Positions 3,466 through 64,000 of a DNA stretch of 64,000 bases are shown here, piece by piece. The DNA is from Octopus sinensis. Lineage: Eukaryota. Each line of letters opens with the position of its first letter. Position 1 is the first letter of the stretch. The stretch spans positions 170,376,001-170,440,000 of the forward strand of contig NC_042999.1 of NCBI RefSeq assembly GCF_006345805.1. The letters are read 5' to 3'. The translations under genes were made by a program, and so were the position numbers. The notes under the pieces were generated by a model. It was given only the letters and a program-made list of their open reading frames with translations, did not search any database and had not been told where the DNA came from.

Positions 3466-6320
3466 AGTATGGCTACTACGCAGAAAAAGCAAGCCTTCCT
3501 TTCCCTGTTAAGGGTAGGAGGCGGCACAATCTCAATGATAGATTCAGCTGATAGCTGTACTCTACCCATTGCAGCTACTCTGCAAAAACTATCAGTCCCG
3601 TTAATTCCGGACACTCCACAAATGCGTGCAAGACGGTTTCCCTGTTCTGACCGCACTTCGGACATGTCGGCGAGACGGCACTTCCGTGCCTTGACAGTTT
3701 ATCACGAACTGGTAACGCGCACGGAAGCACTGCCAAGCCAGAGATTTCTGGTAATTGTCCAGATACCCCGGACCGAAAGTTCTCCGGAACAGGTTGATTA
3801 ACTGATTTTCATCGTAGCCCAGAGCGTCTTCGGACTTAACCTCCACTAACCCGCTATAGAAATCCGCGGTGGAACTCTTATTACCGGCATTGTCCGCCCG
3901 AGAGAGTAGCTGAAGTGCCGGGCGGCACTCCAATTGCCAGTCCCCCAGCCTGGGTCTCTGCTTGATCCAATTACCAATGTCTGTTGAGGACGTTAATTGC
4001 GGAAGGTAGAACCGAACGTGCGGTGACCACACCTGCTCTCCATCCAAGGCATCCCTAGCCCACCCTTTAGGGGTTTCTGGCAGCAGACAAAGCGCTTCAC
4101 GAGTGGATTTCCTCCTTTCCACAAAAAGTGGAAAAGGATTCTTTCCAACTTGTTCAGCCACAAATCGGGGCAAGGCACCACGGTCAGACGGTAGGTGACT
4201 ACTGATGCTATGAACATCTGCACCACCTCCGCCCTCCCTAGCAGGGATAACGCCCGTCCAGACCAGGTCTGGGTTAGAGCGGTCAGCCTGCCGGCCACCT
4301 CACTCCAATTTTTCTCTATCTGGAGGTTTGAACCAATCCAGACTCCGAGCAGCTTAACAGGACCTTCCGTCCAACGCCCCACGACGTTATTGGACTGCAT
4401 CGGATTGCCCTTCCAGGTGCCGAGTTGCAAGCCGACCGACTTGTCCTTGTTAACCGCCTCGTAACTTTTGATGGCTCCTTCCACCACTGGAAGCTGGCCT
4501 TCATCTGCCACGATGATGGAGATGTCATCCGCGTACGCCGTAGCTCCTCTTCCACACCATAGATCATGCTGTGCGCCCCCTAGTGCATCCAACTTCCGCA
4601 GCAAAGGCTCAAGAGCCAACACATATAGAAACGGGGACAGGGGACACCTCTGACGAACTGAACGCTCGATCCTGAACGGCTTCGAAAGGAAACCATTCAC
4701 TTTTACGACAGACTCGATGTCGCTATACAACGCAGCAATCCAACCTCGAAAGGTCGGGCCCAGGCCAGCCTCCCCGAAGACCGCCGCCAAGTACCGATGG
4801 TCGACCCTATCAAATGCCTTAGACGGGTCTAAATGTACCAGTGCCCCCCCCCACTGTTTGTGGGGGTTGGTGTGTTTGCGGTGGTGGGTTTTTTTATTTG
4901 AGGGGCCTGGTGTTTGCGACAACGTTTTTTTGTTTTCTTCACAATCAGCTCGAATGTGGCCCTTTTTTCCGCATTGGTAACAGGTGGGCTTACGGCCTTC
5001 CACCTGTACCCTAAGGGCCACATTCTCCCCAACGAGCACTCTCTCTGGTAGGACCTGAATGTCCTCCTGTTTCCCTAGTATTAAAACAGTGATGTTCCGC
5101 CCTAACCAATTCTGTGTGGCGGAACTTGTAGTTTGTGGTATTTTTATACGGTCCGTCCTATTAAACAGTAGGGCGGCCACCACTTCTTTAGAGTCCACTT
5201 TAGGTGGCACTTCATTGATTCTTACACGGGATGTTCTTCGTCCCATATAAGTTGGCAGAAGTACCACTTCTTTGGTCTTCAGGGGACACACGGAATGCCC
5301 GCGAGCCGCCTCTTCCTTTGAGAATTAGACCTCAACAGAACCATATGCCCGTCCCTTCGAGATATACACTATATCCCTCCATATCGGGGACAGGCATTTT
5401 TCTATTGTTTCTTTTCCGAAGTGTTTAAACCTTTTGTCTTGTGGGCAGAAGGTTTTATACACTACAGTCCTCTTTTTTGTTTCTAACACAGTGGAGGAGG
5501 GTGATATCACAACATCACCTCCCTCTTCCTTCATCCTTTTAAAATATCCCTGCAACATGTCTGCCGATATATCAATATTTTCGGTTGCCACTGCGGCAAC
5601 TGCCGAAAATGTTTTCACAGTGTTGGCGCAATTGCCAGCATCAACATTGCTCTCTACAAGAGCAGATTTTTCATGAATGATTTCAACCGACATGGTTGAA
5701 ATAAGTATCAGAGAAATTGGTTTCCCACAAAACTGGGAAACCTTTAGAAAATGTTTTCCGACAAAAATAATCAACTTTTATTTCCGCAGTCCAAAGTTCA
5801 AATCCCACTCCCGCTGAGGGGCGAGACGTAGCAACAAAGTCTACAACGATTCGAAATTAATTTTTTTCACACAATAATGAAATATAGAATCCCGAAAAAA
5901 GGGAAACAGTTCAAATCTCACTCGCGCTACGGCCGGATGCCACAATAGAGCCTACAATGGCTAAAATTTAATTTTTTCCACAACAACAATTTGCTTATCC
6001 CAAAAACGGGAAGCCTATAATATTTTTTTCCCTCTTAATGAGGATAACAGTTCAAATGCCACCCCCGCTGGGGGCGGGGGGGGACAATAAAGCCTACAAC
6101 GGCTTTAACAAGTTCAACACTAATAATATTAATAAATTCAATATTAATGACTTCAATGTTTCAACAATTACTCCTTCCCGTCACCGGGAAGAAAGCACAA
6201 AAACTTTCAAAGTTCACGAAAACATTTAACAACAAACATTCAACAGTAGAAAAATTATCCTTGTGCAACAACACGCTTGACTCACCGCCAAAAAACACGT
6301 CTGACTTCGACGAAGGTTAA
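3466..6320 (-). mobile_element. Tx1-clade non-LTR retrotransposon copy 1, internally deleted and 3'-truncated
   Basis: ORF1 from ATG 5693 (one in-frame stop near 5325) with zinc knuckle CYQCGKKGHIRADC, fused in frame to RT (DPSKAFDRVDH, YADD, LLGV); C-terminal C-x2-C...H...C region near 3640-3690; homologous to ORF2 at 34690-38126. The 5' boundary is approximate. Confidence 0.9.
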
Positions 6321-7871: not shown

Positions 7872-10165
7872 AGAAACACTTATTATTACAGGGTTGTACT
7901 TTTTTGAGGGAAGATTTAATCCATCACCTAGTTTAACACTGTTTCCTAGTCCTTGGAAGCTTTTAATAGAATCTACTCCGATACAAGCATTCAGATAAGG
8001 TTTCCTGTCAGAGAATAACTTTCTCTCTTCTTCTCACTAGTGTCGGAATCACTATAAAGGATTAGAGGTACTACCAATCTGCCTTTGTCTTAATCAGGTA
8101 AAAATTTATAGTGGTTTCAAATTTTGGCACAAGGCCAGCAATTTTGTGGGATGGGGTAAATTGATTATATCGATCCCAATGCTCACTTGGTATTTATTTT
8201 ATCGACCCCGAAAAGAGGAAAAGCAAAGTCGATCTCGGTTGCATTTGAATTCAGAACGTAATGTCAAACGAAATGCTGCTAAGCATTTTTTTCCGGTGTG
8301 TTAACGATTCAGCCAGCCCTCTGCCTTTATAAAAATATATATTAAACCATCAGCAACAACGATGAACCACCAAAACCCCAAAATGATCCCCTTCTGTGTT
8401 ATGTTGCACATATGTTAAGTTAGATAACTGCATCAACGACAAAGAAGTAAAAGGTAAATCGCGCTCAGTCTGACTTCATCGAATGAAACTATAAGCGAGG
8501 AGAAATACATTCTGTTACAAAATTAATTTCTTTATGTTCTTATATCATTACGTTACTTACGTATTTGAACGTTAATTCGACGTCTGGGTAATCGGTATTC
8601 AAACGCCAACGAGTATTTCCTGCTGTGTACAGCAAAAAGAGAATCAGTAGGTCTTGCTACGGCCGTGGCTTAGCCTCGTCAGCTCTAATCCAGTAGATTT
8701 ATGATCGAAAACACTTCAACTGCGTGCATTATAGTTTTTAGAGGCATTGTGTAATTTGTGTTGACATTATTAAATGTACCCTTCCATTTTTAAAGCAGTA
8801 GGATGTGATTTGCAGGAGAATTGGTTGCTATTTCTAGCAGATTAAGTAACAGCATAGAAACTCTCACATTGATTCGATTAACTATTCCAGCAGCTGCATC
8901 CCCAGGATGATGGGACAGCGAACAACAACTAACATTCGAGGTATCGTTATTCACTATGACCTGCGCCTTGGTGACCTCCCATCCCTTTCAGACGTGACGA
9001 AGGGGGAGGTCAGGCTGACACGGATTAAAATCAAGTGGGTTCAGCTATTTGACATGAATTATTTGTCACAGTTTGTTAATTTGAAATTACGCTGGCAGAA
9101 CATAGCAAAAATCACAAATTCTTGGTATTTCTTGTAAATATATTGTTGCTGTGTTCTACTTCCAAATACATTATTTCATTGTTCCAAAATATCACATTAC
9201 ACAATAATATATTATTTCAGCATATTTAGTGTTTTATTGTTATTTGCTTATGTTGTTTTGGTAGTTATTTTAGTTATCATTTAGTTTTCTTATTTACAAT
9301 TTTTGTCCCTGTAGTGTATTTCTTAGTAGCCGCAGAATTAGTGAGTTTGCAGTTACTGTTGAAAATTGCTTGTAATCCAATATGAAGAACTACTTAGGCT
9401 TATATTGAAAAGCTGTATCGCAACGTAGTTCTAAACTGCTTTGCTATAAACCGTTGTTATATTTCTAATTCATTTTCATGTGGTTTCTTTAATAGATGTT
9501 GACAAAGTTGCACCATCGGATACGTTTATGTACAACATTATCCACAGCTTGGTAAGTTCTTTATCTGGGAGTTACTAGGTTAATTTTCTGGAAAATATCT
9601 TCTCGCAGAGAAATTCCATTTAAAATGCTTGTCAATGTTTGTTCTTGCTTTATAATATATTTCCATCACATTGAGACATAATAATGTTTGCAGTAAAAGT
9701 TTAAAGATCTTTGAGTGATGTATAAGTGCTTTTAGTTAGCGATACATTTCGAACTAAAATCTGGAAAGGGTTTAGTCGATCAAAATTTCGTAGAAAAGTG
9801 GTAATGTGCATCATTAGGAGGCGGAATCTATAAGCTATTCTGAATCGATAGATCATTATACTTAACTTTTTCCAAATAAAATGATATAATTTGAACTTTA
9901 TTAAAATAAATCCAGTTTGACATTGAATGATTTGTTATAATATTCTAATTTACGGAATTTAACATAATTTTAATAAAATATCCTTAGGTTGAACATTTTG
10001 GTTGATACTAAAAAAATTCTGTTATAGAAATACTAGAACTTTCCATTTTAAGCCAATATAGGATTGTAGTAAATTAAAATATCGATTTTGTAATTGCTGG
10101 TTAAATAAATGGGTTAAATCTAACGATAGTTGTGTTTTTTCCATGACGCCACCAAAGCATTGCAA

Positions 10166-10173
10166 TGACGTCA
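10166..10173 (+). promoter_or_regulatory. Palindromic CRE (TGACGTCA), with a TGACG half-site at 10144, upstream of the EB1-like ORF
   Basis: Exact motif about 190 bp before the ATG; function not shown. Confidence 0.3.
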
Positions 10174-10362
10174 TACAGAATTATAGCGTAAGTGATACAA
10201 GAATACAATGGATTCTTGGTTCGAAAGAACAATCAGTACAGAATTATAGAATAGAACTAAGGCTTCTCGGGAGTATTATATTTCTTGTTTCTGGTACTAA
10301 GATATGATTCTTTCGTAACTTTGTCGTTTAATCGTATATAATATATACAGAGAAGAGAAACT

Positions 10363-11493
10363 ATGAAAGTTCTGGACCCTCCGTCCGTTGCTGTCGTCAG
10401 CCAAGAAAAACTCGTTGAATGGTTTCGAAAAACCGTTTCTACACAGATTCATTCCGTTAAAGATTTAGCGAGTGGCTATGAATTTTGCAAAGGTATGTTT
10501 ATGCTTTTCCCAACTGCGCTCAATTTAAACAAAATTAAATCGCAAAACCTAACCATGTATGATAGACACATGAACTACAAACAGCTCCAAGCAGCCTTCA
10601 CATATATCAACTTGAATAAAGAAATACCGATACAGAAATTAATGGAAGGTAACTTGGCAGAGAACTATCATTTTGGACTTTGGTTTAAAGCTTTTTATGA
10701 AATTAACTCTCCTCTACCGACACCCAAAGAAGATCCAGTGACTGAGTGTCGAAAAATTAAGGGTGTAGGTTGTGGTGATATACTGAAAGCTCCAACAGAA
10801 CACGAACTGAAAAGCTGGCCCAAACCAGGAAATACAAAATTTATCAAACGAGCAGTTAATGAGTGTAAAATCGTAGAAAACGAGTATAAACTTATAGACG
10901 AGTATAAACTCGTGGACAATGAGGTTCAAACGGACTTTTATGATTATTTGCAATATGAAGAAATCGCTAATCAGATGAACAATCAGAATGCTATAACTAA
11001 CGAGCTAGCTGAAGCTAACGAGTTCAACCAAATGATTATAGAAACCCTAAAAAATGACAATATGAGCTTAATAACTGAAAATAAAGAGTTAGATATGGAA
11101 AATAAGGCACTTGCCATGGAAAAAAATAGCTTGGAATTTAGTGTCAATCTATTACTCCAGCGCAATGAAGAGCTGGAGAATGCTAATTCCACGCTAATTC
11201 AACAGATTGAAAATCTTGAAGAAGGTTATTTGAATTTGTCAGAAACAAACAAAGAAATAAATATACGTAACCGTGAATTACAAGTCCATTATGAGGATTT
11301 AAACTTACATTCTCAAATCTATAAAAAGGTGCTAGACTGTTCAAACATGGAAGCTAATCTTTTTTTCAATAAACTGCAAAGTATTGACAGACTTTGCCGT
11401 AATGCATCGAGCAATCGTTTGAGGAAATTAATAGTTTCTATATTGAACGAAACGAAATATCAACCAGGTTCTATGTCAGTCGCTTTACCCTAG
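10363..11493 (+). CDS. EB1-like: Divergent RP/EB-family (EB1/MAPRE-like) microtubule plus-end protein, 376 aa, single coding exon
   Basis: N-terminal CH domain aligns by eye with EB1 (LVEWF...[16 protein letters not shown]...LNKIK...NYKQLQAAF...[28 protein letters not shown]); long heptad region; EBH-like motif [16 protein letters not shown]...IVSIL versus EB1 ERDFYFGKLRNIELIC...IVDIL. Uninterrupted 1.1-kb ORF in AT-rich DNA. Confidence 0.85.
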
Positions 11494-11822
<329 letters not shown>

Positions 11823-13823
11823 AACACACAGTTTTTTTCCCCTTTCGTATTCGTAGAAATATCTAAGTGAAATGGGCAATAAAACTATTAAATTTTCCAA
11901 TCATAAAATTGAACTATTCTTTTAAGTTTTCTTTTAAAATGCTTATGTCCCTTTAATTATTATCTTCTAGATTTTTTTTTCAGTCTATCAGGTCTTTCGA
12001 TTATTCGCTGATTTACAACTTAACTACTTTCATTTTTAGTTTGTGCCAGTATATCCGTGTAATAGAACCGCTTAGCTCGGTCATATTTATGTTTGAAACT
12101 TTTTTGCTGAATAGTGTGTTAAAGAAAATTATATACATCTACGTAAAGGACAGTTTCAATGGTAGTAAGAGTGGAAAAAGCGGGCAGCGAACTGATAGAG
12201 TCATTAGAGAGTCGGAGAAAATGCGATTTAGTATTTTCCCCAGCTCTCTACGTTCTATTTCAAATTTGCTTTTCATCTTTTCGGGGTCGATAAGATAAAT
12301 GAGCAATCAAATACGTACTCGACTAATTGCAAAATTGCTGGCCTTGTTTCTAAATCGGAAACTATTGTTAATGTTGGCAAACTGGCAGAATCGTTAGATT
12401 GCTGGGTTTGCAATTTTTATTCTATCTCTTTGCGTCCTGAGATCAAATCACGTCAGGACCAACATTGCCTTTCACTCTTTCTAGTTTGAATGGTTTTGAT
12501 TATAGGTCCGCTCGATCATGATAGCCACAGGCAGTGATGGCTCGTAGATAGAATTAGTCGGGGTGCTGCTTCAGAAAGTTTTTAGCCGTTGTTTTAATAT
12601 TTAATGTAAAAGGAAACAAACATGTAAAAAGAACATTTATACATAAACTTGATCTATTCACGCTTTAGCACTGCCGTGTAGCGTGTTCAATTTGTTTACT
12701 AAATACCGCTGTGAATTCCCCCTTGCTTTTCAAAAATCGCTTAAGCCTAAGGATTCTATAATATACAAGTATAAAGAAAGAATTAAAGAAAAAAAGGAAC
12801 TCATTATATTGAATGTTATCGATAATATCGAATGGAAATAGGAGGTGCTGCAGTAATATACTGTAATATACTGAAGAGGGTTGGTCAGATAGTTTGTGTG
12901 GAAGATGACAGAATTAAAAAGTGTGTTCGTTAAGGTCGACCACATTCTGAAAGAAAAATCTTTCACAAACCGCAGTTAAGAATACAAAGACTACCTTAAA
13001 TCTGTTCTGTGGAGAATTGATGAAAAATTCAATTGACAGCGCATCATGGAAATAAATTTCTCAATGTGGCCAAAAGTTTTGAAGAGAAATGCATAAATCA
13101 AAATAGGATCCAAGAAATCCTTTTAAATGCTGTAACCGGGTTTATTGTTTTAAGGCTGATATTGTTTACCCCCAGGGTCAAACGAATCAAAGAAATGTAA
13201 TAAATCATTGCCATTTGAAAGAATGTATGCCTCCCATCATATAACAAACATATTCTTTCTCTTGGTAGTCTGTACAAATTATTCTGTATTGCATTTAACT
13301 GATAGGAGACATCTCTATTACAGTTGTGGTAAAAACTGTAAGTGATCAGTTCTCATTGAAAAGCCTTGCTCAAACGCATTTGTCTCCCGTCACGTATCTA
13401 TATATGCATGAATATATGTGCGCTACATATGTACACATACACATACATACATATACACTGTTTTTACTGGTTCCTGCTGCAGTTTGTTGGCTTTGGAATT
13501 ATCAGAGCACCACCATATATGCATTTAGGTACATTTGTGTGTATATATGTGTATGAGTGTGTTTATACACATAAGTATATATGCAAGTTGCTCAGCTCAA
13601 TGTCAGCACTAATGACGTTCCAGTCATGACCATCTCATCTTTTACTCAGGTATAGTCTATTTAGAGCTACATTATTTAATATCCTTGTCTTTTTTTTTAA
13701 GACAGTAGGATCATTATTTGAAAGAGATTTGGTTACTATTTCTGTCAAGTCAACGACCACATAAGAGGCTCTCTTCTTGGCTCGTGCGCGTGTGTGTTTA
13801 TAAGAAGAATACTATAAATGTTC

Positions 13824-18199: not shown

Positions 18200-18760
18200 C
18201 TGGAATCATAAAAGAGTACCGATCCTATAAGTGATGGTGCCAATGCCACTCATTTCCCGACTGAATTCCTTGATTCGGTTGAACTATCAAGACAGCGGCC
18301 ACATAAGCTGCAATTGAAATAAAAAAAAGGATCTCCCATAATTCTAATGAGAAACTTGAATCTTCCAAGCCTTTGTAATGGGATGCGTATAATCGTGGAA
18401 GAACTGCTCGACAATCTCAAAGTAGCGAGAATCAACAGAACCGCTTTCAGAAATGAAATCACTACGATACCAAGAATAACAATGAATCTCTCCGAAGGTG
18501 AGGATATCCCTTTGCAGCGAAGCCAATTCCCAGTTCAATCATGCTTCGCTATGACAATTCATAAAGCACAAGGACAAACTATGGACAACGTCTTGATTGA
18601 AGTGGAACGACCTGTAATTCAACACGGTCAACTGTATGTGGCTCTTAGTCGCGGAAGACGAAAGGAGAATGTCAGAGTGTTTTTGAAGGATACCCAGTCA
18701 ACTAAGAATGTTGTTATTAAAAGCTTTCTCTCGAGCAAACTGCAACAGCGTCAAAATGAG
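18200..18760 (+). mobile_element. Helitron RepHel fragment (PIF1-like helicase C-terminus)
   Basis: ILMRNLN...LCNG...IPRI...QRSQFPV..CFAMTIHKAQGQT...HGQLYVALSR motifs in ORF 18347-18808; upstream part is frameshifted. Confidence 0.85.
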
Positions 18761-18832
18761 AAAATATTCCTTCTGACGTCAGAACGTGAAAGGGAAAGGC
18801 AAAACTAATACAAGTAGGAATGATTTCCTTCA

Positions 18833-19981: not shown

Positions 19982-20389
19982 TCTTTTTTTCTCTTTTTAC
20001 TTGTTTCAGTCATTTTGACTGCGGCCATGCTGGAGCACCGCCTTTAATCGAGCGACTCGACCCCGAGGCTTATTTTTTGTAAGCCTAGTACTTATTCTAT
20101 CGGTCTCTTTTGCCGAACCGCTAAGTGACGGGGACATAAACACACCAGCATCGGTTGTCAAGCAATGGTAGGGGGACAAACACACACACACAAACATACA
20201 CGCACATACATATATATACATATATACGACGGGCTTCTTTCAGTTTCTGTCTACCAAATCCACTCACAAGGCTTTGGTCGGCCCGAGGCTATAGTAGAAG
20301 ACACTTGCCCAAGGTGCCACGCAGTGGGACTGAACCCGGGACCATGTGGTTGGTAAACAAGCTACTTACCACACAGTCACTCCTGCGCC
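19980..20389 (-). mobile_element. tRNA-derived SINE, family A
   Basis: Reverse-complement copy of 198-617. Confidence 0.85.
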
Positions 20390-21610
20390 ACATATATATA
20401 TATATATCACGCACACGTACACATACACACACACACACACACCTACATACATACACTACACTTGTATACACACACACTTACATTCATACACACACACACC
20501 TACACAGCCATACCCTCACTCAGACACACACATCTACCTACACACACACAAACACACACAGACACACACCCATACATACATACATCTACACACACACGCC
20601 TACACACATACATACACACATACATAAACACACACACATACACATACACACACATACGCACACACACATATACTTATACACATGCACACACACACACATA
20701 CATACATACACCCATACACATACACACACACATACCTACATACTCCTATACGCACATACATACACACAGACATACACACATACACACTCACACAAACATA
20801 CACACACACATACTTACACACACACTCATCTGCACGCGCACACACATGCATGACAAACACCCATACACTCACACTCACATACGCACACACACACCTACAC
20901 TCCCACACACATACACACGCACCTACATACACACACGCACGCATACACACGCACACACACGCATACACACATACATTACACACGTACACACACACCTACA
21001 TACACATGCATGCACACACACACACAAACATGCACGGACACACCCAGACATACATACATACACCTATATACACACGCCCACACACCTACATACACACACA
21101 TATACACACGCCGACACACCTACATACACACACATGCATACACACACACACATGTACGCACATACACACACATATACGCACATACATATATACCCACACA
21201 CATGCACACACACACACACACATACGCACATGCATGCATGCATGCACACGCGCACACCTACACGCATACACACACACACACGCACGTACACATACATACA
21301 TACACACACGCATACATACACCCATACACATACATGCATTCTACACACACATACATACACACTCACACATACATACACACACACTCACTCACACACCTGT
21401 ATGTACGCGCGCACACATGCACATACACACACTTCCCCACATCCACACGTACATACATACACACTCATACACATACACACACACACACACACGGACATAC
21501 ATCTATGCACACACATATATACACACATACTCACATACATTCATCGGACACACTGCCACCCAGACATACACACAGACACACTCACACATCCACACACATA
21601 CATACTTACG
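20390..21610. repeat. Long degenerate (CA)/(CATA)-rich compound microsatellite
   Basis: Direct reading; source of the spurious His/Thr and Cys/Val ORFs. Confidence 0.95.
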
Positions 21611-22472
21611 CGCATACTCGCAGGCGCGCGCACACACGCGCTTGCGCCGGTTCGCGCACACATACGCGCCGCATGCACCTCGCTCTTGGACCCGACGAGA
21701 CCTCCCGCGCGTTCCTGGGACCGTCGCTTGTCGTTGGGTTTTCCCATGCCCGTCTCCGCGGGACCACTCTTCCATCTTCCCCTCAGCTGGAGTCCTTTTT
21801 CCTTAACCTCCCCCCCCTTTTTGTTACACACACGCGCACACATATACACACATTGCTTAAATATATACATTACTCTTACACACATTCAATATACTCGCCA
21901 TTAATACTACCACGACACTGGACACACACACACACTACCACTCAACACACGCTGGCACGCTACATACGCCCCCACCCCTTCCCCTCCCTCCCTTCCTCCT
22001 TCCTTCTTTTTCTTACTACTGACCTTTGTCTGCTATGCCGACCACTGTCTCGCCCTACCTCACACGCCTACACACAGACGCACACACTAACACATACATA
22101 TATTTTTTGTTTTTTTTATCTCGCCTCACACACACACATACACACACGCACACGCACACACTCACACATACACACACATCTGTTGCGTTACCAACCTTGT
22201 CTCCACTCTTTTGCCTTTAAAAACCTACTTTGCTCTTGTTATCGTAAACTTCCGCCTTCACCATGTGTAACTCGTAAACACCAGTCGTTTTTTTTCTCTA
22301 TCCCTGTTGCCCGCTTTGGGATCTTTCTTTCCTCTCTCTTCCTTCTTTATGTTTCCGACGAAGAGCTCCGCTCGAAACGTCATACCCTCCTGCTTCCATT
22401 TCCTGAGCGCCTATTAATAATAATACTGTAATTGTTCCATTGTTGTTGTTTTTTTGTTTTCCCGTTTGGATT

Positions 22473-32286: not shown

Positions 32287-32503
32287 TGACGGATGTGATG
32301 TCGTTTCAGCTCCGAAGGTAATCATTTATTTTGACTATTTAAAAGTGTATATTGACAAACATTTTGTGCTTAAAAGTTGTGCAACAACATCCACTGTAAA
32401 CCTTTGATAAATATCGACACAAAATTTTGCCCCCTGTGGGCAAAATTTAAAAGAAAAAATTCTCATAGCCTTCGTGGTTTCATTTAGCCATTTTATTTCC
32501 AAA

Positions 32504-34647
32504 ATGGCCACTGGCCACCACGAGGCTGAGCTGCAAGTCAAGCGTGACGCAGAAACAGAAAAACAGGATGCTCTGTTAGCATACGCCGAACCTGACAACT
32601 CCACCACCACCAACAGCAACAAATACAAAACAAAGGTCGCAAGGCCAAGCACCGTCAACACCATCAGTGAGTCCACCACCACCACCAACACCATGGCAGA
32701 ATCTGCTACTAAAACTGCTATCCCTACTAAAGATATCGCCACCAATAACAATACCAACATCACCGCCACCAAAGACCGTGCCGTCAATGCTACTAATAGT
32801 ACCAACACCACCGCCGTCACCAAGAACGACAATAACAACAACAACAACAACGACGACGACAACAACAATTCCCTTCAACCACTGCTCACTCCATCACCAA
32901 CAAGTGAAAAAATAACGACGACAAGCAAACGAAATGTCGAATTTTGCCCCAGTGCAGGACTAAAGTACGCAGGCAATTTTCCACCCCTTCCTACTTGCAC
33001 GATCGAACCAAACACACCAATTTTACAAACTGCAGCCAACAACAACATCACCACAAGCAACAACAATAACAAAACAACAACAAATTTCGCTGAGGCGATT
33101 AAAGAAAAAAAAACAACAATATACTTTACGGCTCAACAAATACAGGACACGAACATCAAAATAACAGAATCAGAAGGTATAGTAAAAATAAACATACCAG
33201 AAGACATTTTGGAAAATGAAAAAAGACGAACAATCATTTATAAAATAGTTAACAAAAAAACAAAAATCCCAGAGAAGGCCAACACAAGCAAAATAGAGAA
33301 GTGCTTGAAACCCATCTGGGATCACAAAGAATATGTAACCTGGTGGAACAAATTTGCCCACATACAAGTTGTTTTCTACACCGAAGAGTTAGCTAGACAT
33401 TTCTCAACGCTAACTCTTCACTCAGATGAACTCCAACTTACACCAAGCTATCGGGGACAGAAAGTGACTAAGATCACTCTAAACAATGTCCCCAAAATAG
33501 CCAATAGTCTATGGCTTGTAAAGGCCTTATGCGTAAAAATGGCGAATTATACTATTTTGGAAACCACAGTCACAGAGCATAAAAACTGGGTGGGAAAAAA
33601 AGTAGAATTTCTTCTACATATACATCATGAAGATATAAAAAAAAATACCCACCCAGATATGTGTATCAGACGACCACAAGTTATATGTGGTCGTCGATGG
33701 CAGAAGACCACGTTGCTACATATGCGGCAGTGAGCAACACATAAAAAAAGACTGCAAATCTGCCGCAAGAAAACAACAGCAGCCGGAAACAAAAACAAAT
33801 AAACAAGGTTTACTACCCACACCACTTTTTGCAGGAACAAACCTCACCAAACAAACAACCACACCAACGGCAGCACCAAGAACAGAAGCAGCATCACCAA
33901 CAACAACAACCAAGAATATACCAACTCCCAAACCAAGGACATCTGCCAAAAAGACACCCAGCAAAAATGAAGAAACAATTACAACTCCAAATCCCCACAA
34001 AATTGAGACCCTAAACAACACAACAATACCCACAATCACTCAAACACAAAATACCCAAACCCCACATCCAAAACCGCATACACCACAACCAAACGCTCAC
34101 CAACCAACACCAACAACAAAACCAACACAGTCGACAATAGACCCCAATACTTTCCCTCTTCCAGACTCCGATTCGTCTGATCTGTCATTAGACGAAGAAG
34201 ACACGGAAGATTGGCAAATAGCCACAGGGGGGAGAAGAAAAAAGGGGAAAAAAAAGAAAAGAAAAAATAACAAACAAAGCGGGAAGATACACCACTCCCG
34301 AAACAAAAACATCCACAGAAAACACACACATCAACACAAACACACCATCATCAAACCCCACAAAAATGTTGACAGCCATTAACACAAACAACCACGACCT
34401 AATGGAACACATTAGGTCAAACACTAACATTACTGAAAACGACATAAAAACAAGTAACCACCCACACACAACACCACCACAACACATTAAAATAATACAC
34501 GTGACACAGAACACATACAGCACCCTGAAATCTCTTTACCCTGATGCAGTAGGGAGATTTCAAAAGTACTCATCGAAAAAACTGTATAAAAGCCTCATAG
34601 AAGAAGACCGTGAGGTGAAAGACAAAGAACTTTCGAAAAACAAGTAA
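32504..34647 (+). pseudogene. Tx1 ORF1 (Gag-like; T/N-rich N-terminus, zinc knuckle CYICGSEQHIKKDC, P/T-rich tail), 2 frameshifts
   Basis: Segments 32474-33733, 33687-34382 and 34366-34647 join at an A9 run (about 33637-33645) and an A/G run (about 34227-34266). Confidence 0.85.
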
Positions 34648-34689
34648 CCTTTTCTCTCTCCTTTTCCTTTTTTGCACTTTTATCGGAAC

Positions 34690-37600
34690 ATGCTCAGAAT
34701 AGGTAGTATAAATGTACGTGGCTTGGGGTCGCCTTGGAAACAAGGCTACCTGTTAAATGACATCAAGTCACTAAATCTGAACATCATAGCCATCAGTGAG
34801 ACCAGACTCCACAGCTTGCGGGCACTCCAGCACATTTTCGGTACACATTTCAACATTTATTTTTCTCCGTGTCTACCGAGAATGGGCGGAGGTGGCACCG
34901 CGGTGCTTATCCGGAAGAGTCTGGATCTCAAAGTAAGAGCAAATTTCCTAGATTCGGAGGGTAGGCTGGTCGTTTTAGATGTCGATGGCAGCAATGAGTG
35001 TGCTTTTCGACTGATAGCAGTTTATGCTCCGTCCTTAACAGGCCGACCAGATTTCTTTCGACGTCTAGAGTCTTTCATGGGAACGTCTCGTCCTTTACTT
35101 TTAGTGGGGGATTGGAATGCCACCCTGGACACGCATCTAGACTACGTGGGCAGAGATAGCAATAGAAGGGGATGCAAATGCCTCAAAGACCTGCTCAGAC
35201 GTTTCCAACTGTCTGACAGGTACCGACTGGACCACCCGAATGTGCCAATGTGGACATGGAGTAACCGCATCGGGTCGTCCAGATCATACTTAGATAGAGT
35301 ATTCTGTAGGACAATAGATAAAAATAGTGTAGGTTGTCCACAATTTCATATAGTCAGTTACACAGATCACAAGTTTGTGACTTGTACACTTGACTTAGAT
35401 AAGACACATAGGCAGGGTCCTGGTTACTGGAAACTGAACGCGTCTTTTACAGCACGACAGGTTTACAGGGACCGGATCAGCACATTAGTTAAGAGAGCTT
35501 TGACGGGTACCATCATCAACAACAGATGGTGGTATGCCCTAAAAAAAGCGATTAAAGCAGAATCAGTCAGATACAGTAGAGCCCTAGCATTAGACCGAAA
35601 TAGAATAGAGGGAGATTTAGTTAAGGTTTTAGAAGAGGCACTTAGAACTGGCATCGCGTCCAACGTACTGGCGGCGAGATTGGCCCTCGACCAACACCTC
35701 AACGCCAAACACGAGGGATGCGTTGTCAGAGCTAGGATGCGTGCTCTGAGGAACGAAGGAGTTGGAGCCGCCCAAGAGGCCCGAGTGGTGGAGACGCAAC
35801 GAGGCAACAGAGCCACCATCAAGTCTCTTATAGATGAACAGGGGCGCGAATTGCTCGAGCCTAAAAGGATGTGTGGGGTTTTTCAACAACACTTCACCCA
35901 ACTGTTTGGGACAAGTGGTGAGTCAGAAAGCAGAGTGGACTTTAGTGCCTACCTGCATGCCTTGCCACGACTCTCAGCAAGGGAGGTGGAGTCTTGTGAA
36001 AAGCCTATCACAGCTGCGGACGTACAGGATGCGATGGTAGGCTGCGCGAGAGACAAGTCACCAGGCTTGGATGGTCTGCCCTACGAATTTTATTTTCATA
36101 TGCCAGACTTGTTTGGAGGCGTCTTGGCAGCTGTCTACTGCAACTGGCAGCAGAACGGGAGTATTCCTGCTTTTGTAAAGCGAGGAGCAGTGGCACTGAT
36201 CAAGAAAGACCCAAACAAGGGGGACGTCATAGATAATTTCAGGCCCATCACTCTGCTCAACGCAGATTTGAAAATTTTGGCCAAGGTGTTAGCCGAGAGG
36301 TTGGCGCTTGTCATCAAGAAACTAATCGACAAGGCGCAAACATGCGCCGTGCCGGGTAGAAGTATTCATGACAACCTCCATCTGATGCGCTACATCATAG
36401 ACAGGGTAGTTAAAAATCCTGGCATGGGTGGGGCGCTGATCAATTTGGATCAATCAAAAGCCTTCGATAGGGTAGACCATCACTACTTGGAGGCTGTCCT
36501 CAAAGCGGCTGGTTTCGGTCCAGTTTTCCGCGGTTGGATCGCTGCCTTATACAGCGGCATCCGCTCAGTAGTTCGCGTAAATGGTCATCTATCCAGACCT
36601 TTTAACATCATGCGTTCGGTTCGTCAGGGATGCCCCCTCTCATCGCTGCTGTATGTACTGACTCTTGAGCCACTACTGCGGAAACTGGCGACGCTGAGGG
36701 GCATCCCACGAGAGCTGGGATGCGGGAGGAGCGTGTCTGCATACGCGGATGACGTCACCGTCATAGTGTCGAGCTACGAGCACATCGAGCTGGTCGGCGA
36801 GACACTGAAAGAATACGAAGCGGTAACGGGAGCAAAAATTAACCGGGAAAAGTCAGTGGGCTTGCGGCTCGGCACCTGGAGAAGCAAGCCCATGCCGTCC
36901 AACAGCGTCTCCATCGTGGGACGCTGGACGGACGGACCTGTTAAATTGCTCGGGGTCTGGTTCGGTCCGGACCTCCAAATGGAGAAGAACTGGGGCGAGA
37001 TAACGACTAGGGTGGCTACTCTCACCCAGAAATGGACTGAGAGAAAGCTATCCCTAAAAGGTCGGGCGGAGGTGGCGAACGCGTACATCGCATCCGTCAT
37101 CGAGTATCGTCTGACCGTCGTGCCTTGTCCCGACCCTACCATCACCAAACTGGAACGCATACTCTTCCGCTTCTTGTGGAAGGGAAACGTTCCGATGGTT
37201 AGGCGATCCATTTGCTGCCAACACCGCTAAATGGAGGGCTGGGCATGCCGTGGTTGATGATGCGCAGACATGCGCTGAGACTGCGACATCTCCGGCGCTT
37301 CATAGACAACGGTGAACAGGGGTGGCCGCCTTTTGTGCGGCGCGCTTTCCCGCAGCTCGTCTCCTTGGACGAACTACAGTCATGGATCAAGCAGAGACCG
37401 AGGCTAGGCGAATGGCACCGCGAGTGTCGCGTTGCTCTCAAGCAACTCTGCCGTCCGGGATCGAACTTGTGCGACTCCATCACAACAAAGGCATTCTATA
37501 GAGGATTAGTGGAGGGGAGGTGCGACGACGAACTCGGGCAGAGTCTGGGCGTCGACGAGGAACACCTGACCCGCCTGTTCAGGACAACTTTCGGGCCGGG

Positions 37601-38126
37601 ACCTATGAACAATCACCAAAGATCCCTGGCCTGGCAGTGCTATCGAGAAGCATTACCTGTTCGGGATAAGCTCTACAGACACGGTTCCAGACACACTGGA
37701 CCGACTTGCCCGAGATGCGGTCAGAGCGACGAAACCGTTCTGCACGCACTCGTGCAATGTCCAACCATTTCCGACCTGTGGGCTTATGCCGAACGGCTGC
37801 TGTCACGTGTGGGACGAATCCGCCTATCGGCCGAGTCTATCTTGAGAATTGCTCCGCCCCCTTCCCTCAACCGGGAAGGCAAGGCAGTTTTCATCGTACT
37901 GGTGGCCATGGTGAAAGAATGTGTGTGGTGGACTCGAGCGAAAGGATTAGAGACAAACACTTACCTCTCTGGCCAATCGCTCATCAACTTTTTCAAGTAC
38001 CACTTGAAAAGGAAGGTGAGAATGGAGAGGGAAGTTTTGTCTCGCGAAAGATTCAAAAAAAGATGGGTGAATGTTGCAAAGATGGTGCGTGCTAGTAACG
38101 AAACCATTTTGAGCATGATCCTGTAG
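34690..38126 (+). pseudogene. Tx1 ORF2: APE endonuclease, reverse transcriptase and C-terminal zinc finger, 1 frameshift
   Basis: INVRGL, ISETRL, VYAP, GDWN, TDH; DKSPGLDG, FRPITLLN, DQSKAFDRV, RQGCPLS, YADD; CPRCGQSDETVLHALVQCP. One-base loss at about 37224 (CACCGC versus CACCCGC in copy 3). Confidence 0.92.
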
Positions 38127-44353: not shown

Positions 44354-44656
44354 AATAAATGCGCCCTTTTAAAGCCTAGCCAGGCTCCCGGTTTCAATGG
44401 CGTATGTGTTCCCCAGCTGGAAGGGACGCCAGTCCATTGCAGCGTTACTCGTTTTTGCCAGCTGAGTGGACTGGAGCAACGGGAAATGAAGTGTTTTGCT
44501 CAAGAACACAACGCGTCGCCCGGTCCAGGAATCGAAACCACAATCTTATGATCATGGTGCTGACACCCTAACCACTAAGCCACGCACCTCTACACACACA
44601 CACACACACACATACATATACATATATATATATGTGTGTGTATATATATATATGTG

Positions 44657-44691
<35 letters not shown>

Positions 44692-44844
44692 GACGGGCTT
44701 CTTTCAGTTTCCGTTTACCAAATCCACTTAGTTTTGATTGGCCCAAAGCTATAGGGGAAGACACCTGCCGGAAGTGCCGCGCAGTGGGACTGACCCGGAG
44801 TTATGCGACTGGGAAGCAAGCTTCTTACCACAAGCCTGCGCCTC

Positions 44845-44931
44845 TGTGTGTGTTGTGTGTGTGTGTGCGTGTGTGTGTATGTGTGTGTGTGTGTGCGTGC
44901 GTGTGTGTGTATGTGTGCGTGTGTATGTGTG

Positions 44932-44973
<42 letters not shown>

Positions 44974-45255
44974 TGTCTGTGCGTGCGTGTGTGTGCGTGT
45001 GTGTGCGTGTGTGTGTATGTGTGTGTGTGTGTGTGTGTGTATGTGTGTGTGTGTGTGCGTGCGTGTGTGTGTGTGTGCGTGCGTGTGTGTGTGTGTGTAT
45101 GTGTGTGTGCGTGCGTGTGTGTGCGTGTGTGTGTGTGTATGTGTGTGTGTGTATGTGTGTGTGTGTGCGTGCGTGTGTGTGCGTGTGTGTGCGTGTGTGT
45201 GTATGTGTATGTGTGTGTGTGTGTGTGCGTGTGTGTGTGTGAGTGTGTGCTGTGT
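44845..45255. repeat. (GT)/(GCGT) compound microsatellite
   Basis: Direct reading. Confidence 0.95.
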
Positions 45256-46395
45256 ATGATGTTCGGTTACAGGAGTCGTTAGAATCTAGGTATTTCAACG
45301 TGTAGGATACCAGGAAAGGCGATGTACTGGGCTGTAAGCCCAGTACATCGCCTTTTTGATCTCTGAAGTATTTCATGTTGCTCTTTAATCATTTCATCAT
45401 CTGACATGTGGCAACCAGTTGTACCTGTACAGGTAATGTCGATTGACGGAAGGAGTGAGCTGATGTCTAAACAAACATTTGATCACTATAAACAAATCAT
45501 CTGTGTGGTTGTTGGACAAGAAATTGACGAACCCTCATATGTCGTCTAATGACGGGAGAGTCCAGCATATGCGTCTATGTATATGTGAGTGTGTGTGTGT
45601 ATATATATATATATTGAGACCCCCTTCGGCCACGACTGACCATGGGATTGCACCTAGAAAGTTACCCTCCGAGGTACAAGTCCGAGCAAGGTTGTTTATA
45701 GAAAACCAGCAGTCGCCCATGCATACCGGCCTCCCATCTTCATGCCACCAGTGTCATCCAAAGGAAAAGCAACACCCGATACAGCTTGGCACCTGTGACG
45801 TCGCAACTCATTTCTACATCTGAGTGAACTGGAGCAACGTGAAATAAAGTGTCTTGCTCAAGAACACAATACGCAGCCCAGTCCGAGATTCGAACTCACA
45901 ACCTCACGATCGTAAGCTCGACGCTCTAACCACTGAGCCATGCGCCCTCACTTGTATATATATATTTCGTTTTGGGATTTGGTTTGCAAGATTCATTATG
46001 TGAGTTCGTGTGTTGAAGCATATTCTGTTGTATCTGGGGAGAGTCATTCTCTTTTGGTGCCTTATAATTTAACACACTCACCGGTAAAATTTCCACTTAT
46101 TTCCTTCTTTATTTTTCTAAAATTTTCGAAAACAAACATGGAGGGTCGTTAGACCAGAACGAGAGGAAAATAGTGAACGCTGGGAGAAACATTTTTTTGA
46201 AAAGAGAAACGATAGAAGAGAGAAAAAAACACGACCGCTCTTTTGAACGTCCGTTGCAGGAAAAGAAAGATGGTCAAGTGAGGAAAAGAAAGATGGACGA
46301 TGGTTACTTGTGAGCAACAAGAGAGAAAGAAAAACAGAAAGATGTGAGGGAGAGCACTGTCTTAAGGCATGGGGATCCCAAATCTGACTTACATA

Positions 46396-47655
46396 CGAGG
46401 GACGTTCAATAAGTAATGCTTCTGACCCACTTGTAGTTGTTTGATCTAGCTGAAATTTTGCATGTGCAATTATTTATATATCTATAGATTAAGTGGCAAA
46501 TTACAGGTGTTTGAACTGAGTCAAGTGTGAAATGGAACTTGCTGAGTGTCGAGCAGTGATCCGGCTTTTGTATTTGAAAGGACGCACACCACGGGAGACT
46601 TTTGATGAAATGGAAGTAACTTATGGTGATGATGCCCCATCATATGACCTTGTAAAACGCTGGCATCGTGAATTCAAACATGGTCGGAACTCTGAAGAAA
46701 CAGCTCCCAGATCTGGTCGCCCCCTTCTGCCATTGATGAGGCATCTGTCCGTCAAGTTGAGGCTGCCATTTTGGAAGATCGACGCATAACTATTCACCAA
46801 ATAGCCCATGAGGTCAAGATTAGTACCGGGTCTGTGGAAACTATCATTCATGACCATTTGCATATGCAAAAGGTGTCTGCCAGATGGATTCCCAGGTTGC
46901 TCACACCTTTCCAGAAGCAAGAACGCGTCGAGTGCTCGAGGATGAATTTGGAGATGTGCCAAGAAGATGAGTCAAAATGTTTCAAAAGACTGATTACTCA
47001 GGATGAAACCTGGGTCCATCACTATGATCCAGAGACCAAAGCCCAGTCAATGCAGTGGAAGCACCGTGACTCACCTCCTCCAAAGAAGGCAAGGGTGCAG
47101 CCCTCCGCTGGCAAGGTCATGCTCACAGTCTTCTGGGACCAGGACGGAGTAGTGATGACAGATTTCCTGGCAAAGGGTACCACAATTACAGGAGCCTATT
47201 ATGCTTCACTTTTGAGGAAATTAAGAGAAGCTATCAAAATCAAGAGGCGGGGCAAGATCAGCAAAGGCATCCTCCTCCTGCAGGACAACGCTCCGGTCCA
47301 CAACTCGCTTGTTGCCAGATCAGAAGCACAAGCGTATGGCTATGAACTCCTCCCCATCCCCCCTACTTTCCTGACCTTGCACCCTCTGATTTTCCCCTCT
47401 TCCCAATCATGAAGTTGTTTTTGAAAGGAAAGCGTTTCCCAGATGATGCAGCCTTGATTTCTGAAGTCACGTTGAGGTTGGAGGACCAAGCTGGGGTCTT
47501 CTACAAAAATGGTCTCCAGAGCCGCATCAAACGATGGGAGAAATGCGTAACTCTGGGTGGTTCCTATGTAGAAAAAGACTAATAACTGTGCCAAGTTTCG
47601 TTGCTCCACTGCTATGGGAAGTGGGTCAGGGGCATTACTTATTGAACGCCCCTCG
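46396..47655 (+). mobile_element. Full-length mariner (D,D34D) transposon, irritans-like; transposase 46532-47582 with 2 frameshifts
   Basis: 37-bp TIRs CGAGGG(A/G)CGTTCAATAAGTAATGC.. with TA duplication; WIPRLL, TQDETW, QDNAPVH and PY.PDLAPSDF motifs. Confidence 0.92.
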
Positions 47656-49041
47656 TATGTTGTAGCTTGCTGTCAATAAATGAATACAGTAGGCCGGAGG
47701 GGGGGGGGGCTCTAACGCTGCTTCGACGTCCCTGATCCCCACATTTGTATAAGTTTGTGCTGAACTATTGCTGGATCAATACTGGAATAACTACATTATT
47801 CTCATCCCTTCGTTCAAAACCTATTCAAATATACACCCAGCCCCGCACAGTATGAACTCCTACACATTTATGATAAACAACCATGTTTCTCAATGTCTAT
47901 ATGCCACCATGCTTGCCTGTATGTGTGTGTGTGTGTGTCTATCCATATATGTGTATGTGTATATTTATGTATGTGTATATAATTGAATGTGAATTGTGTA
48001 TGTTTGTCGATGAATATGAATGTGTGTATGTGTATGTGCATGCATGCGTGTGTGTGTGTGTGTATGAGAGAGTATGTTTGTGCGCAGAAGCGTGTGTAGA
48101 TGTGCATAGCTGTGTGTATGTGTGTGTGTGTGAAGGTAAAGGTAAACAGTTAACGATCTCATCTCAATATAACATTGATATTGATAACGTCAGCAGTCAC
48201 GTCAAAACTGGACAATCACACACACACACACACGGATACACAGACATACACCCACGCACACAAACACACACACAGCTATGCACATCTACACATGCTTCTG
48301 CACACTAACACACTCTCTCATACACACACTGATATCTACACAGGAACAAACACATACGCATGTACATTCACACATCTGAAAACACCTACACTCCAATGAA
48401 TACACATATATGTACACAAGCTCACAAGCACACACGCACACACACACACACGCACACACAATTATATTCATGAAAACACACAAGCAAGTATATAAACGCC
48501 CACACACGGATACAAGGATTTGCGCATAAACAAACATATATAACCAAAAACAAACATAAACACATATATACACACAGAGAAGGAAACACACACACTCACA
48601 TATAAACACACAAACATGTAAATGCGCGCACACACACACACATATATAAACGCCTACACGACACACATATACATGCACATCTACACGTAAATATGTTTGT
48701 GATAAAAAAAGGCAAAAAAAAGCAGTAAGATGAAATTAAAAATGATCCTCTGTCGATTTCGACAATGACTAATTCAGTTGTTCGATAAGTGGTTGAGTGT
48801 TCCACAGATGTGTGTCTCCCCCACCTTGGCAGAACCCATGTAACATTCATTGTGTTAATCCTTTGAACTGCATATCGTCGTTAGTAAATCACAGCAGAGT
48901 CGCGGACGATTGTCGGCCAGACTTGACTTTTTGGGGACTCGGATGTGACTAAGAAGACACAAAATCGAATGCAGAGATGATCGTCGGCGCCTTGGAGATA
49001 TTAAGAATAAAATCCTATTAAGATTTCTTTCTTTTTATTTA

Positions 49042-63243: not shown

Positions 63244-63345
63244 AGATAGATAGATAGATAGATAAACTTACTTGGAAATGGATGCGTGACGTTCTATCAA
63301 ATAATAATATAAATAATATATATATATGCATACATATATGTATAT

Positions 63346-63393
<48 letters not shown>

Positions 63394-64000
63394 GCATATA
63401 TGTCTTTTTTTCTCTGTCTCGAAATGGTGCTTATAATGTCTTATGATATTTTACGGTAAAAACCTTAATAGTTGAGTCAGTCGTCAAATATTTTAATAAT
63501 AAGAGAGAAAACTCATTTCATGAGAAACCAAGCAAGGCAAAATGGGAGACTACACAGAGTTAGAAAGATTCATGCTTCAAGAGTTACCCTGTGCGTGCAC
63601 TCGTGTATGCGTGTGTATGTGTGTGTGTGTAAATTTATACACACATATATACATACATAGGTACACGTAAACATTTATGCACACACACACACACACACAC
63701 ATTTCAATACGGAGCAAATATTTCACGAAAAAATAATTTTCAATGATATCATTGACTCTGCTATTATCTAGTATAACAATTTAAAAATGACAATAACAGA
63801 ATCAATAATATAGGCGAATGCAGGCCCAAGAACAGCATTAAATAGCTGAAGGATTAAAATTAATCAAAGGACATACTTAGCATGTCCTTTGATTAATTAT
63901 ATATTGTCGGCTGTCCATCTGCTTACTCCTCATTTCGAGCACTGAAAGACAATATGAGTTTTCGAAGGGCCGTTGCTCCTGCAAACCAAAATAAAATTTG

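Follow-up and report, generated by a model that had tools for sequence, protein, structure and literature searches.

We analyzed a 64,000-nucleotide (nt) stretch of the Octopus sinensis genome (NCBI RefSeq assembly GCF_006345805.1, contig NC_042999.1, positions 170,376,001 to 170,440,000 of the forward strand, identical to GCA_006345805.1 chromosome CM016861.1 near 170.38 Mb; hereafter the window, in which position 1 is the first letter) and found that the open reading frame (ORF) at 10363..11493 on the plus strand, LOC115209593, is probably a functional, selectively maintained gene for a divergent EB (RP/EB, MAPRE) family protein. Its coding sequence (CDS) is a complete single exon of 376 codons plus TAG with an ATG start. 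An earlier reading of the nucleotide sequence alone (the original prediction) had described an intact, intronless, EB1-like gene at these positions, and the frame was indeed intact; "intronless" holds for the coding region, which is uninterrupted, and introns in the untranslated regions (UTRs) are possible. The gene is the sole host-like ORF of the 64-kb window, which is otherwise dominated by fragments of long interspersed nuclear element (LINE), mariner and helicase type and by microsatellites. Automated annotation already recognizes it as EB-like, its O. bimaculoides counterpart bearing the RefSeq name 'RP/EB family member 1-like', but no publication on it turned up, also when literature and supplements were searched for LOC115209593, XP_014780879, further accessions and Sequence Read Archive (SRA) run ids.

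Conservation and selection of the coding sequence

The 376-amino-acid (aa) protein was identical (100%) in O. vulgaris (OX597816.1) and 94% identical in O. bimaculoides, in each of which the counterpart occupies the corresponding locus. The Argonauta hians copy, also at the corresponding locus and named after O. sinensis LOC115209593, showed about 65–68% protein identity, and the Argonauta genome carries there a continuous 386-codon ORF that is colinear with the Octopus gene.

The coding sequences of O. sinensis and O. bimaculoides differed by 50 substitutions and no indels. Analysis by the Nei-Gojobori method of the 26 synonymous and 24 non-synonymous changes gave a synonymous divergence (dS) of 0.128, a non-synonymous divergence (dN) of 0.027, and a dN/dS of 0.21, and under neutrality so low a count of non-synonymous changes has a binomial probability of 3e-7. 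By region, dN/dS was 0.07 in the calponin-homology (CH) domain, 0.67 in the linker that follows it, and 0.08 in aa 230-376. Against Argonauta, the proportion of synonymous differences (pS) was 0.63 and dS about 1.4, which is near saturation, with dN 0.20 and dN/dS 0.145; the regional values were 0.07 for the CH domain, 0.05 for the coil (aa 250-320), 0.03 for the EBH-like domain and 0.42 for the linker. As judged from these sequence comparisons, the CH domain, the distal coil and the EBH-like domain are under strong purifying selection. The original prediction had taken the open frame as a sign of selection and had proposed dN/dS across cephalopods as a check; the ratios, far below 1 against both O. 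bimaculoides and Argonauta, agree with it, as does the binomial test. Because dN/dS was low and the ORF was intact across species, we rejected a pseudogene or a chance ORF.

The CH domain is of the EB type

By sequence comparison and predicted structure, the CH domain of the protein (aa 8-118; 10384..10716, plus strand) is of the EB type. A phmmer search of all PDB chains aligned aa 13-126 without gaps to residues 16-127 of human EB1 (E 2.7e-18). Human EB3 was matched at the same value and Bim1 and Mal3 more weakly, and the significant chains were from the EB family only (EB1/EB3/Bim1/Mal3). In an AlphaFold2 model (monomer, 14-sequence alignment; mean predicted local distance difference test score [pLDDT] 75), aa 8-118 were modeled with pLDDT above 90, in good agreement with the CH domain that had been predicted at about aa 13-117. 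A Foldseek search of the PDB with this model returned CH domains of EB1, EB3, Bim1 or Mal3 as all of the top 15 matches (E 1.8e-7 to 1e-2), with target template modeling (TM) scores of 0.75-0.86 and root mean square deviations (RMSD) down to 1.0 A; among non-EB structures, SPEF1 reached E 0.07 and HOOK 0.23-0.3. The domain also has a low dN/dS, and the protein is most probably homologous to EB family proteins. Membership in the HOOK or SPEF1 families, which the original prediction had named as the assignment that would speak against it, was rejected: phmmer gave 0 sequence matches to either, and their Foldseek values were far poorer than that of EB1 (2e-7). The top Pfam match of the whole protein, FBF1 (E 9e-5, 21.6 bits vs a cutoff of 45), was rejected as compositional coiled-coil similarity, as were the further coiled-coil Pfam families below it.

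The net charge of the CH domain, +3, equals the canonical EB median. With EB1 residue numbers in this domain being those of the octopus protein plus 3, EB1 K89 is retained as K86, and K98, K100 and Q102 are replaced by E95, N97 and A99, respectively; the three replacements are identical in O. bimaculoides and Argonauta. In the alignment, therefore, the recognition residues K100 and Q102, a hallmark of the EB family, are absent. Mutation studies of EB1 bear on these positions: K89E abolished tubulin binding (PMC7240100), and K100E/Q102E impaired microtubule binding (PMC5042579).

Linker, coiled coil, EBH-like domain and tail

The domain order of the protein, namely CH domain, linker, coil and EBH-type helix-loop-helix, is that of the canonical EB/MAPRE proteins (human EB1-3, Bim1, Mal3), and its CH domain is about 32-34% identical to those of human EB1 and EB3, with an RMSD of about 1 A. 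Between the CH domain and the coil lies a linker (aa 119-199; 10717..10959, plus strand) that is predicted to be disordered, with pLDDT below 50 at aa 120-208, and that evolves fast, as indicated by its dN/dS and by indels against Argonauta. It contains an in-frame 18-bp tandem duplication at 10882..10917 on the plus strand (15/18 bases identical). The original prediction had recognized this duplication and placed it at 10880-10915; the duplication exists, and the codon-aligned coordinates lie 2 bases further on. Both units are present in O. bimaculoides (ECRLID/ECKVVD), the Argonauta linker holds several related repeat units, and Tandem Repeats Finder (TRF) gave only a weak period-10 signal at this place.

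Canonical EB proteins have a coil of roughly 40-50 residues. In the octopus protein, aa 200-347 (10960..11403, plus strand) were modeled as a single continuous alpha-helix of 148 residues with pLDDT above 90, which would form a parallel coiled-coil stalk of about 22 nm and which supplies, at its C-terminal end, helix A of the EBH-like domain. One unbroken heptad register runs from about aa 191 to 337, and the hydrophobicity profile peaked sharply at a 3.5-residue period (power 45.1 vs a shuffle mean of 10.8), a peak matched by 39 of 2000 shuffles. The distance from the end of the CH domain to the EBH motif was 213 aa, as compared with a median of 103 (interquartile range [IQR] 88-120) among 75 canonical EB representatives, which also served for the comparison of tail charge. 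The greatly extended coiled coil of the original prediction was thus supported.

An EBH-like domain occupies aa 319-362 (11317..11448, plus strand), and its dN/dS against Argonauta was the lowest of the regions compared there. It has the expected layout, in which the coil end carries an LFF-K-L-x-x-I-D motif and is followed by a loop and a second helix (350-362) that ends in ...SIL; AlphaFold2 likewise gave a turn, a helix at aa 350-362 and then a disordered tail, that is, the expected hairpin. Comparison by hhalign of the orthologue C-termini with 20 canonical EB C-termini gave a probability of 95.1% (E 2.9e-8, 47 columns). On these alignments the region is likely homologous to EBH, and the EBH-like motif reported earlier was supported by hhalign and the hairpin, with Pfam below threshold (see below).

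At the EBH positions, F218, K220 and I224 of EB1 are kept (F335, K337 and I341), and F216, Y217 and E225 are changed to L333, F334 and D342. Canonical EBs have in common with the octopus protein the FF-K-L-x-x-I-(D/E)-x-x-C core and, in helix B, the ...IL, and the bundle-core residues I224 and C228, and also L221, are conserved. The groove rim is altered by R222 to Q, D215 to N and Y247 to N; R214 is replaced by A. Slep et al. (2005) reported that EB1 F216A, Y217A, F218A, K220A, I224A and E225A did not bind MACF2, that Y217F had only a mild effect on this binding, that R222A, D215A and others altered binding, and that I224 was required for dimerization (PMC2171753). Because L333, F334, F335, K337, I341 and D342 stand at the positions tested by these mutants, the hydrophobic core and the bundle core appear to be largely kept.

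The protein ends in a short, non-acidic tail (11449..11490, plus strand) and has no EEY/F motif, so that the acidic tail that is a hallmark of the EB family is absent, as had been predicted. The net charge of the last 20 aa was 0 vs a canonical median of -5. Within the tail, NETKYxP is conserved in Argonauta and in the related protein P0004; the last 8-10 residues are not conserved. In canonical EBs, the acidic EEY/F tail serves CAP-Gly binding and autoinhibition. Apart from its length, spacing, tail charge and substituted residues (E/N/A for K98/K100/Q102; L for F216, Q for R222, N for D215 and N for Y247), the octopus protein differs from canonical EBs in its single coding exon and in its membership of a separate clade.

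A clade of single-exon EB-like genes in octopods

When 1.84 billion representative proteins were searched exhaustively with HMMER, 889 matched, and a small subset of these was far closer to the octopus protein than canonical EBs were. In a neighbor-joining tree of 153 CH domains (100 bootstraps), the octopus protein grouped outside all canonical EBs, human EB1 and EB3 among them, in a clade of its own that comprised 19 CH domains from 17 representative proteins. The bootstrap support was 90/100 for this divergent EB-like clade and 100/100 for the lineage of the O. sinensis, O. bimaculoides and Argonauta proteins. All clade members with a source name came from Argonauta hians, O. vulgaris or O. 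bimaculoides, and the remaining members came from assemblies of Logan runs or of ENA analysis ERZ21867824, so that the clade is shown for octopods and may extend to other cephalopods. The original prediction had proposed a lineage-specific paralogue; the separate, octopod-named clade supports the lineage specificity, but the gene is one of a clade and not a lone paralogue. In a word-indexed search, the full-length protein retrieved the Argonauta orthologue only and a CH-only profile gave no match; a family profile was swamped there by coiled-coil words, and the exhaustive HMMER search was used for the family instead. No Logan contig carrying the O. sinensis EB-like protein was found.

At CH sites where conservation among canonical EBs is 72-95%, members of the clade share substitutions (N25 to R, A43 to D/E, Q46 to L/K and E106 to Y/H). 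Their C-terminal halves vary: P0003, P0005 and P0156 have tandem CH domains, and P0007, P0009, P0015 and P0024 have a short EB-like architecture with EBH. The Argonauta protein P0006 (695 aa, single exon) has an EB-like CH domain and a coil of about 500 aa and no EBH, and P0004 (559 aa) has a long coil, an EBH-like domain and an ...ILNxTKYxP ending as in the O. sinensis protein. The relatives P0004, P0006, P0003, P0009 and P0014 (the last four from Argonauta) and P0012 (from O. vulgaris) share with it the CH substitutions at N25, A43 and E106 and the absence of an acidic-aromatic tail. The gene for P0006 lies 7.5 kb upstream of the Argonauta orthologue on the same strand (L003 2443-4530, BAAFZT010000014.1). 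A tblastn search of the Octopus window for its counterpart matched only LOC115209593 and nothing in the 10.3 kb upstream; the counterpart may lie beyond the window start.

P0014 is encoded in Argonauta by two copies, L014 and L015, at 47.64 Mb and 33.10 Mb of BAAFZT010000020.1, that is, 14.5 Mb apart. The copies are in opposite orientation and have an identical protein and an identical 260-bp upstream sequence; they represent either a recent duplication or an assembly duplication.

A single coding exon was found in 7/7 of the other members whose structure was readable (P0006, P0012, P0009, P0003, P0014, P0005 and P0015), and the clade members are dispersed on different chromosomes or scaffolds. 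The clade-wide single-exon structure and the dispersal fit an old event in which an EB mRNA was retroposed and the copy was then duplicated and dispersed; such an origin is plausible. The gene is old enough for retrogene marks such as poly(A) and target-site duplications to have decayed, and retrotransposition machinery is present in the genome, as seen from a near-complete APE/RT LINE at 34672-38126 of the window. We found no description of an EB expansion in the cephalopod literature searched. In the giant squid genome, a 'MAPRE1' model has been listed among transposon-like non-Hox genes in the expanded Hox cluster (PMC6962438), which hints that dispersed EB1-like copies also occur in decapodiform cephalopods.

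Sequences upstream and downstream of the gene

The 222 nt before the ATG (10141-10362) showed 96.8% identity to O. bimaculoides and 67% identity between Octopus and Argonauta, falling to 48% with many gaps farther upstream. The distal part contains a block at 10144..10194 (plus strand) that is near-invariant between Octopus and Argonauta despite saturated synonymous sites and that is a putative core promoter. It comprises a half cAMP response element (CRE) TGACG at 10144-10148, a full palindromic CRE TGACGTCA at 10166-10173, and a TATA-like ATTATAGCGTAAGTG at 10180-10194, all on the plus strand; the last contains GTAAGT at 10188-10193. The following 10195..10362 (plus strand), by its conservation, is a putative 5' UTR or proximal promoter. 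It holds, on the same strand, a 13-codon upstream ORF (uORF) at 10208-10249 whose ATG is conserved in Argonauta, a 17-nt block GATATGATTCTTTCGTA at 10301-10317 that is identical in Octopus and Argonauta, and a 4-codon mini-uORF (MILS*) at 10304-10318 that starts inside this block. An AG at 10349-10350 (plus strand) is a possible splice acceptor by its sequence; GTAAGT at 10188 and this AG could delimit a 5' UTR intron.

Paired CRE half-sites also occur upstream of the paralogues. In a test devised post hoc from the promoter of LOC115209593 and set against a background of mostly non-promoter DNA, half-sites no more than 30 bp apart and within 400 bp of the ATG were present in 5/6 distinct paralogue genes, as compared with 37 of 944 background windows of 400 bp (3.9%). 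The five are LOC115209593 and 4/5 of the others (upstream regions of L003 [2043-2442], L011, L012 and L014). Upstream of O. vulgaris P0012 there is a dense cluster, TGACGACGTCGTCA...TGACGTCA...TGACATCA. From these sequence motifs, the paired CREs suggest co-regulation by a CREB/CREM/ATF-type factor.

Downstream, an (AT)~164 microsatellite detected by TRF at 11496..11822 (no strand assigned), presumably within the 3' UTR, begins 3 bases past the stop codon. The (AT)n tract measures about 320 bp in O. sinensis and O. vulgaris, whereas that of O. bimaculoides has only about 20 bp. In Argonauta, (TA)n tracts lie some 130 bp past the stop. An AATAAA at 11878..11883 (plus strand) is a candidate polyadenylation signal, whose context, GGGCAATAAAACTATTAAATTTTCC, both O. 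bimaculoides and O. vulgaris have retained.

Evidence against the assignment and alternative explanations

Several observations weigh against a functional EB family gene of retroposed origin, or against parts of that interpretation. The Argonauta gene model of the orthologue has two predicted GT..AG introns. The first is an in-frame 96-nt segment (GTGTAA...TCATAG, L003 10476-10571) that codes for additional NYKLID-type copies of the linker repeat, and the second is a 620-nt 3' segment that contains (TA)n (L003 11145-11764). A likeness of the spliced Argonauta tail SITVSI to the Octopus tail SMSVALP was considered and dropped, as there was no clear DNA-level homology. As to retroposition, (AT)n and no poly(A) remnant was seen past the stop codon (target-site duplications were not searched for), and introns in the canonical octopus EB1 are taken from the general presence of introns in metazoan MAPRE genes. 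The Logan contigs with EB-like relatives end in microsatellites and look genomic rather than like transcripts, and the post hoc design and background of the CRE test count here as well. The replacements N97, A99 and E95 could, from their alignment with EB1, weaken or abolish microtubule binding, and our statements on microtubules, dimers and partners derive from the sequence and a monomer model. Finally, the Pfam CH family (PF00307) was not among the nine families matched at E<=1, and the Pfam EB1 C-terminal model (PF03271) matched aa 332-361 at E 0.005 with 17.5 bits, under its gathering score of 27 bits. The Pfam hidden Markov model (HMM) check proposed in the original prediction thus gave no match to the CH family among those listed and a sub-threshold match for the C-terminus.

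These Pfam results are what could be cited for a CH domain from another family (HOOK, SPEF1/CLAMP or NDC80-type) with only superficial likeness to EB. Since all significant PDB sequence matches were to EB proteins, Foldseek favored EB (2e-7 to 1e-2), and the EBH profile comparison reached 95%, this explanation is refuted and we regard it as extremely improbable. Very improbable, too, is a neutral relic, whether a processed pseudogene, a chance ORF among repeats or an annotation artefact, as might be supposed of the sole host-like ORF amid the LINE, mariner and helicase remnants and the microsatellites of the window. Across Octopus the frame is open and free of indels, and it is intact in Argonauta despite saturated synonymous divergence, dN/dS was 0.21 and 0.145 overall and 0.03-0.07 in the domains, and the upstream block is conserved, by which a relic is effectively refuted.

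The remaining alternatives accept a functional gene and concern what it does. An ordinary plus-end-tracking EB, that is, a redundant copy with the usual SxIP partners in which the long coil and the missing tail are tolerated, would account for the full EB domain order, the K89 equivalent, the CH charge of +3 and the retention of most buried or hydrophobic EBH residues, and Y217F is nearly neutral in EB1. This explanation is unlikely in view of the separate clade with its clade-wide changes at N25, A43, Q46 and E106 and of the replacement of K100/Q102 by N/A, K98 by E, Y247 by N and R222 by Q, together with the absence of the acidic tail; moreover, derived states that have been under strong selection for so long point to a distinct function and not to drift of a spare copy. 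Alternatively, the CH domain may no longer bind microtubules, and the protein may be a coiled-coil scaffold or a heterodimer partner that modulates or poisons canonical EB1 through the EBH-like bundle. The replacement of K100 and Q102 and the charge reversal at K98 are consistent with a non-binding scaffold, but the CH domain is strongly constrained (dN/dS 0.07), still has the EB fold and K89, and does not differ from the canonical median in net charge. The conserved bundle-core residues I224 and C228, and also L221, would allow pairing with EB1, for which the 148-residue coil is a poor length match to the roughly 40-50-residue canonical coil. A C-terminal heterodimer of the Drosophila EB1 paralogue Mst27D with Eb1 or CG18190 was proposed by its authors as speculation, and their co-immunoprecipitation of Mst27D with Eb1, which did not detect it, was negative (PMC10359004). 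We consider this second functional alternative improbable as well.

Other elements in the window

A near-complete non-LTR (long terminal repeat) retrotransposon lies at 32474-38126 on the plus strand. Its ORF1-like frame (32474-34382) is rich in Ser, Thr and Asn and has no Pfam match, and its ORF2, which is split into two frames near 37212-37230, matched APE endonuclease (PF03372, 1.7e-13), reverse transcriptase (RT; PF00078, 7.5e-32) and zf-RVT. Further RT elements of this type, in truncated form, are found on the minus strand at 3993-5291 and 61152-63397, with matches to RVT_1 (1.8e-11) plus a zinc knuckle and to RVT_1 (6.8e-7), and the ORF at 61152-61913 resembles the C-terminal part of the full-length element. 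A remnant of a mariner/Tc1-type transposase is present at 46771-47412 on the plus strand (PF01359, Transposase_1, 7.1e-26). An isolated 153-aa ORF at 18347-18808 (plus strand) has C-terminal motifs of superfamily-1 (UvrD/Pif1-like) helicases (UvrD_C_2 1.2e-6, Herpes_Helicase 3.5e-6) and, from these matches, could be part of a Helitron- or Pif1-like element. The region also has a TGACGTCA site, at 18774. At 20155-22431 there is an imperfect CA/CACATA-type microsatellite of about 2.3 kb that is extremely strand-asymmetric (GC skew -0.56, AT skew +0.30) and yields long spurious His/Thr-rich ORFs, and similar tracts are found at 44496-45376 and 47883-48678.

Proposed role and implications

For the divergent EB family protein encoded by LOC115209593, we propose the following mechanism. 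The protein would form a parallel homodimer through its coiled coil of about 22 nm, with an EB-like four-helix bundle at the end of the coil. Its two CH domains, in which the K89 equivalent and the net positive charge are retained, would bind microtubules, probably in an altered mode: because the equivalents of K100, Q102 and K98 are N97, A99 and E95, lattice binding or bundling would be likelier than comet tracking of the GTP cap. A protein without EEY/F would neither recruit CAP-Gly proteins (CLIP-170, p150Glued) nor be autoinhibited by its tail. A cargo groove with its core kept and its rim changed would probably hold different, lineage-specific partners about 20 nm off the microtubule surface, and the paired CRE promoter would place the gene under the control of a CREB/CREM/ATF-type factor.

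The nearest known parallel is the set of EB1 paralogues of the Drosophila testis (Mst27D, CG15306, CG32371 and CG2955; PMC10359004), which are likewise lineage-specific and divergent, combine an EB-like CH domain with a coiled coil and lack the EEY tail. According to that study, Mst27D is retroposed, dimerizes, and binds and bundles microtubules; its C-terminus has the non-canonical partner Nup358, to which it links microtubules during sperm nuclear elongation (PMC10359004). Both the Drosophila and the octopod cases are multi-gene expansions with variable C-termini, but they are independent, the one having arisen in an arthropod and the other in cephalopods. In addition, a conserved EBH-like domain is present in the octopus protein and no EBH is recognizable in Mst27D, and testis expression and function have been shown for Mst27D, whereas the octopus gene is known here from its sequence. 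The possible germline or sperm role raised in the original prediction is supported only by the analogy with Mst27D and by the upstream CRE motifs; it is a reasonable idea, and we offer a role in the spermatid manchette as a hypothesis by analogy. Octopus spermatids are reported to have a manchette (PMC3004946). More broadly, and as a tentative, on balance doubtful, proposal, octopods and perhaps all coleoids may possess a retrogene-derived EB-like family with swapped C-terminal modules and CRE co-regulation that serves a specialized array (spermatid manchette or neuronal) in parallel to the Drosophila testis paralogues, and in which LOC115209593 would encode a long-stalked, CAP-Gly-independent adaptor.

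The plus-end network of microtubules is centered on EB proteins, whose architecture differs little between yeast and humans. The octopus protein combines four departures in an EB under strong constraint, namely a coil three to four times longer, an absent tail, the replacement of two recognition residues and a changed groove rim, and it thus offers a natural experiment that could separate the EB features required for tip tracking from those that matter for lattice binding and the choice of partners. If our interpretation is true, the single-exon EB-like clade, with its modular C-termini and common promoter signature, would represent an expanded cephalopod gene family that is not mentioned in the cephalopod genome papers we found. 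After Drosophila, it would be the second independent case in which EB1 retrocopies were recruited to specialized microtubule arrays. If its expression were spermatid-specific, the gene would be linked to the cephalopod manchette and to the shaping of the sperm head.

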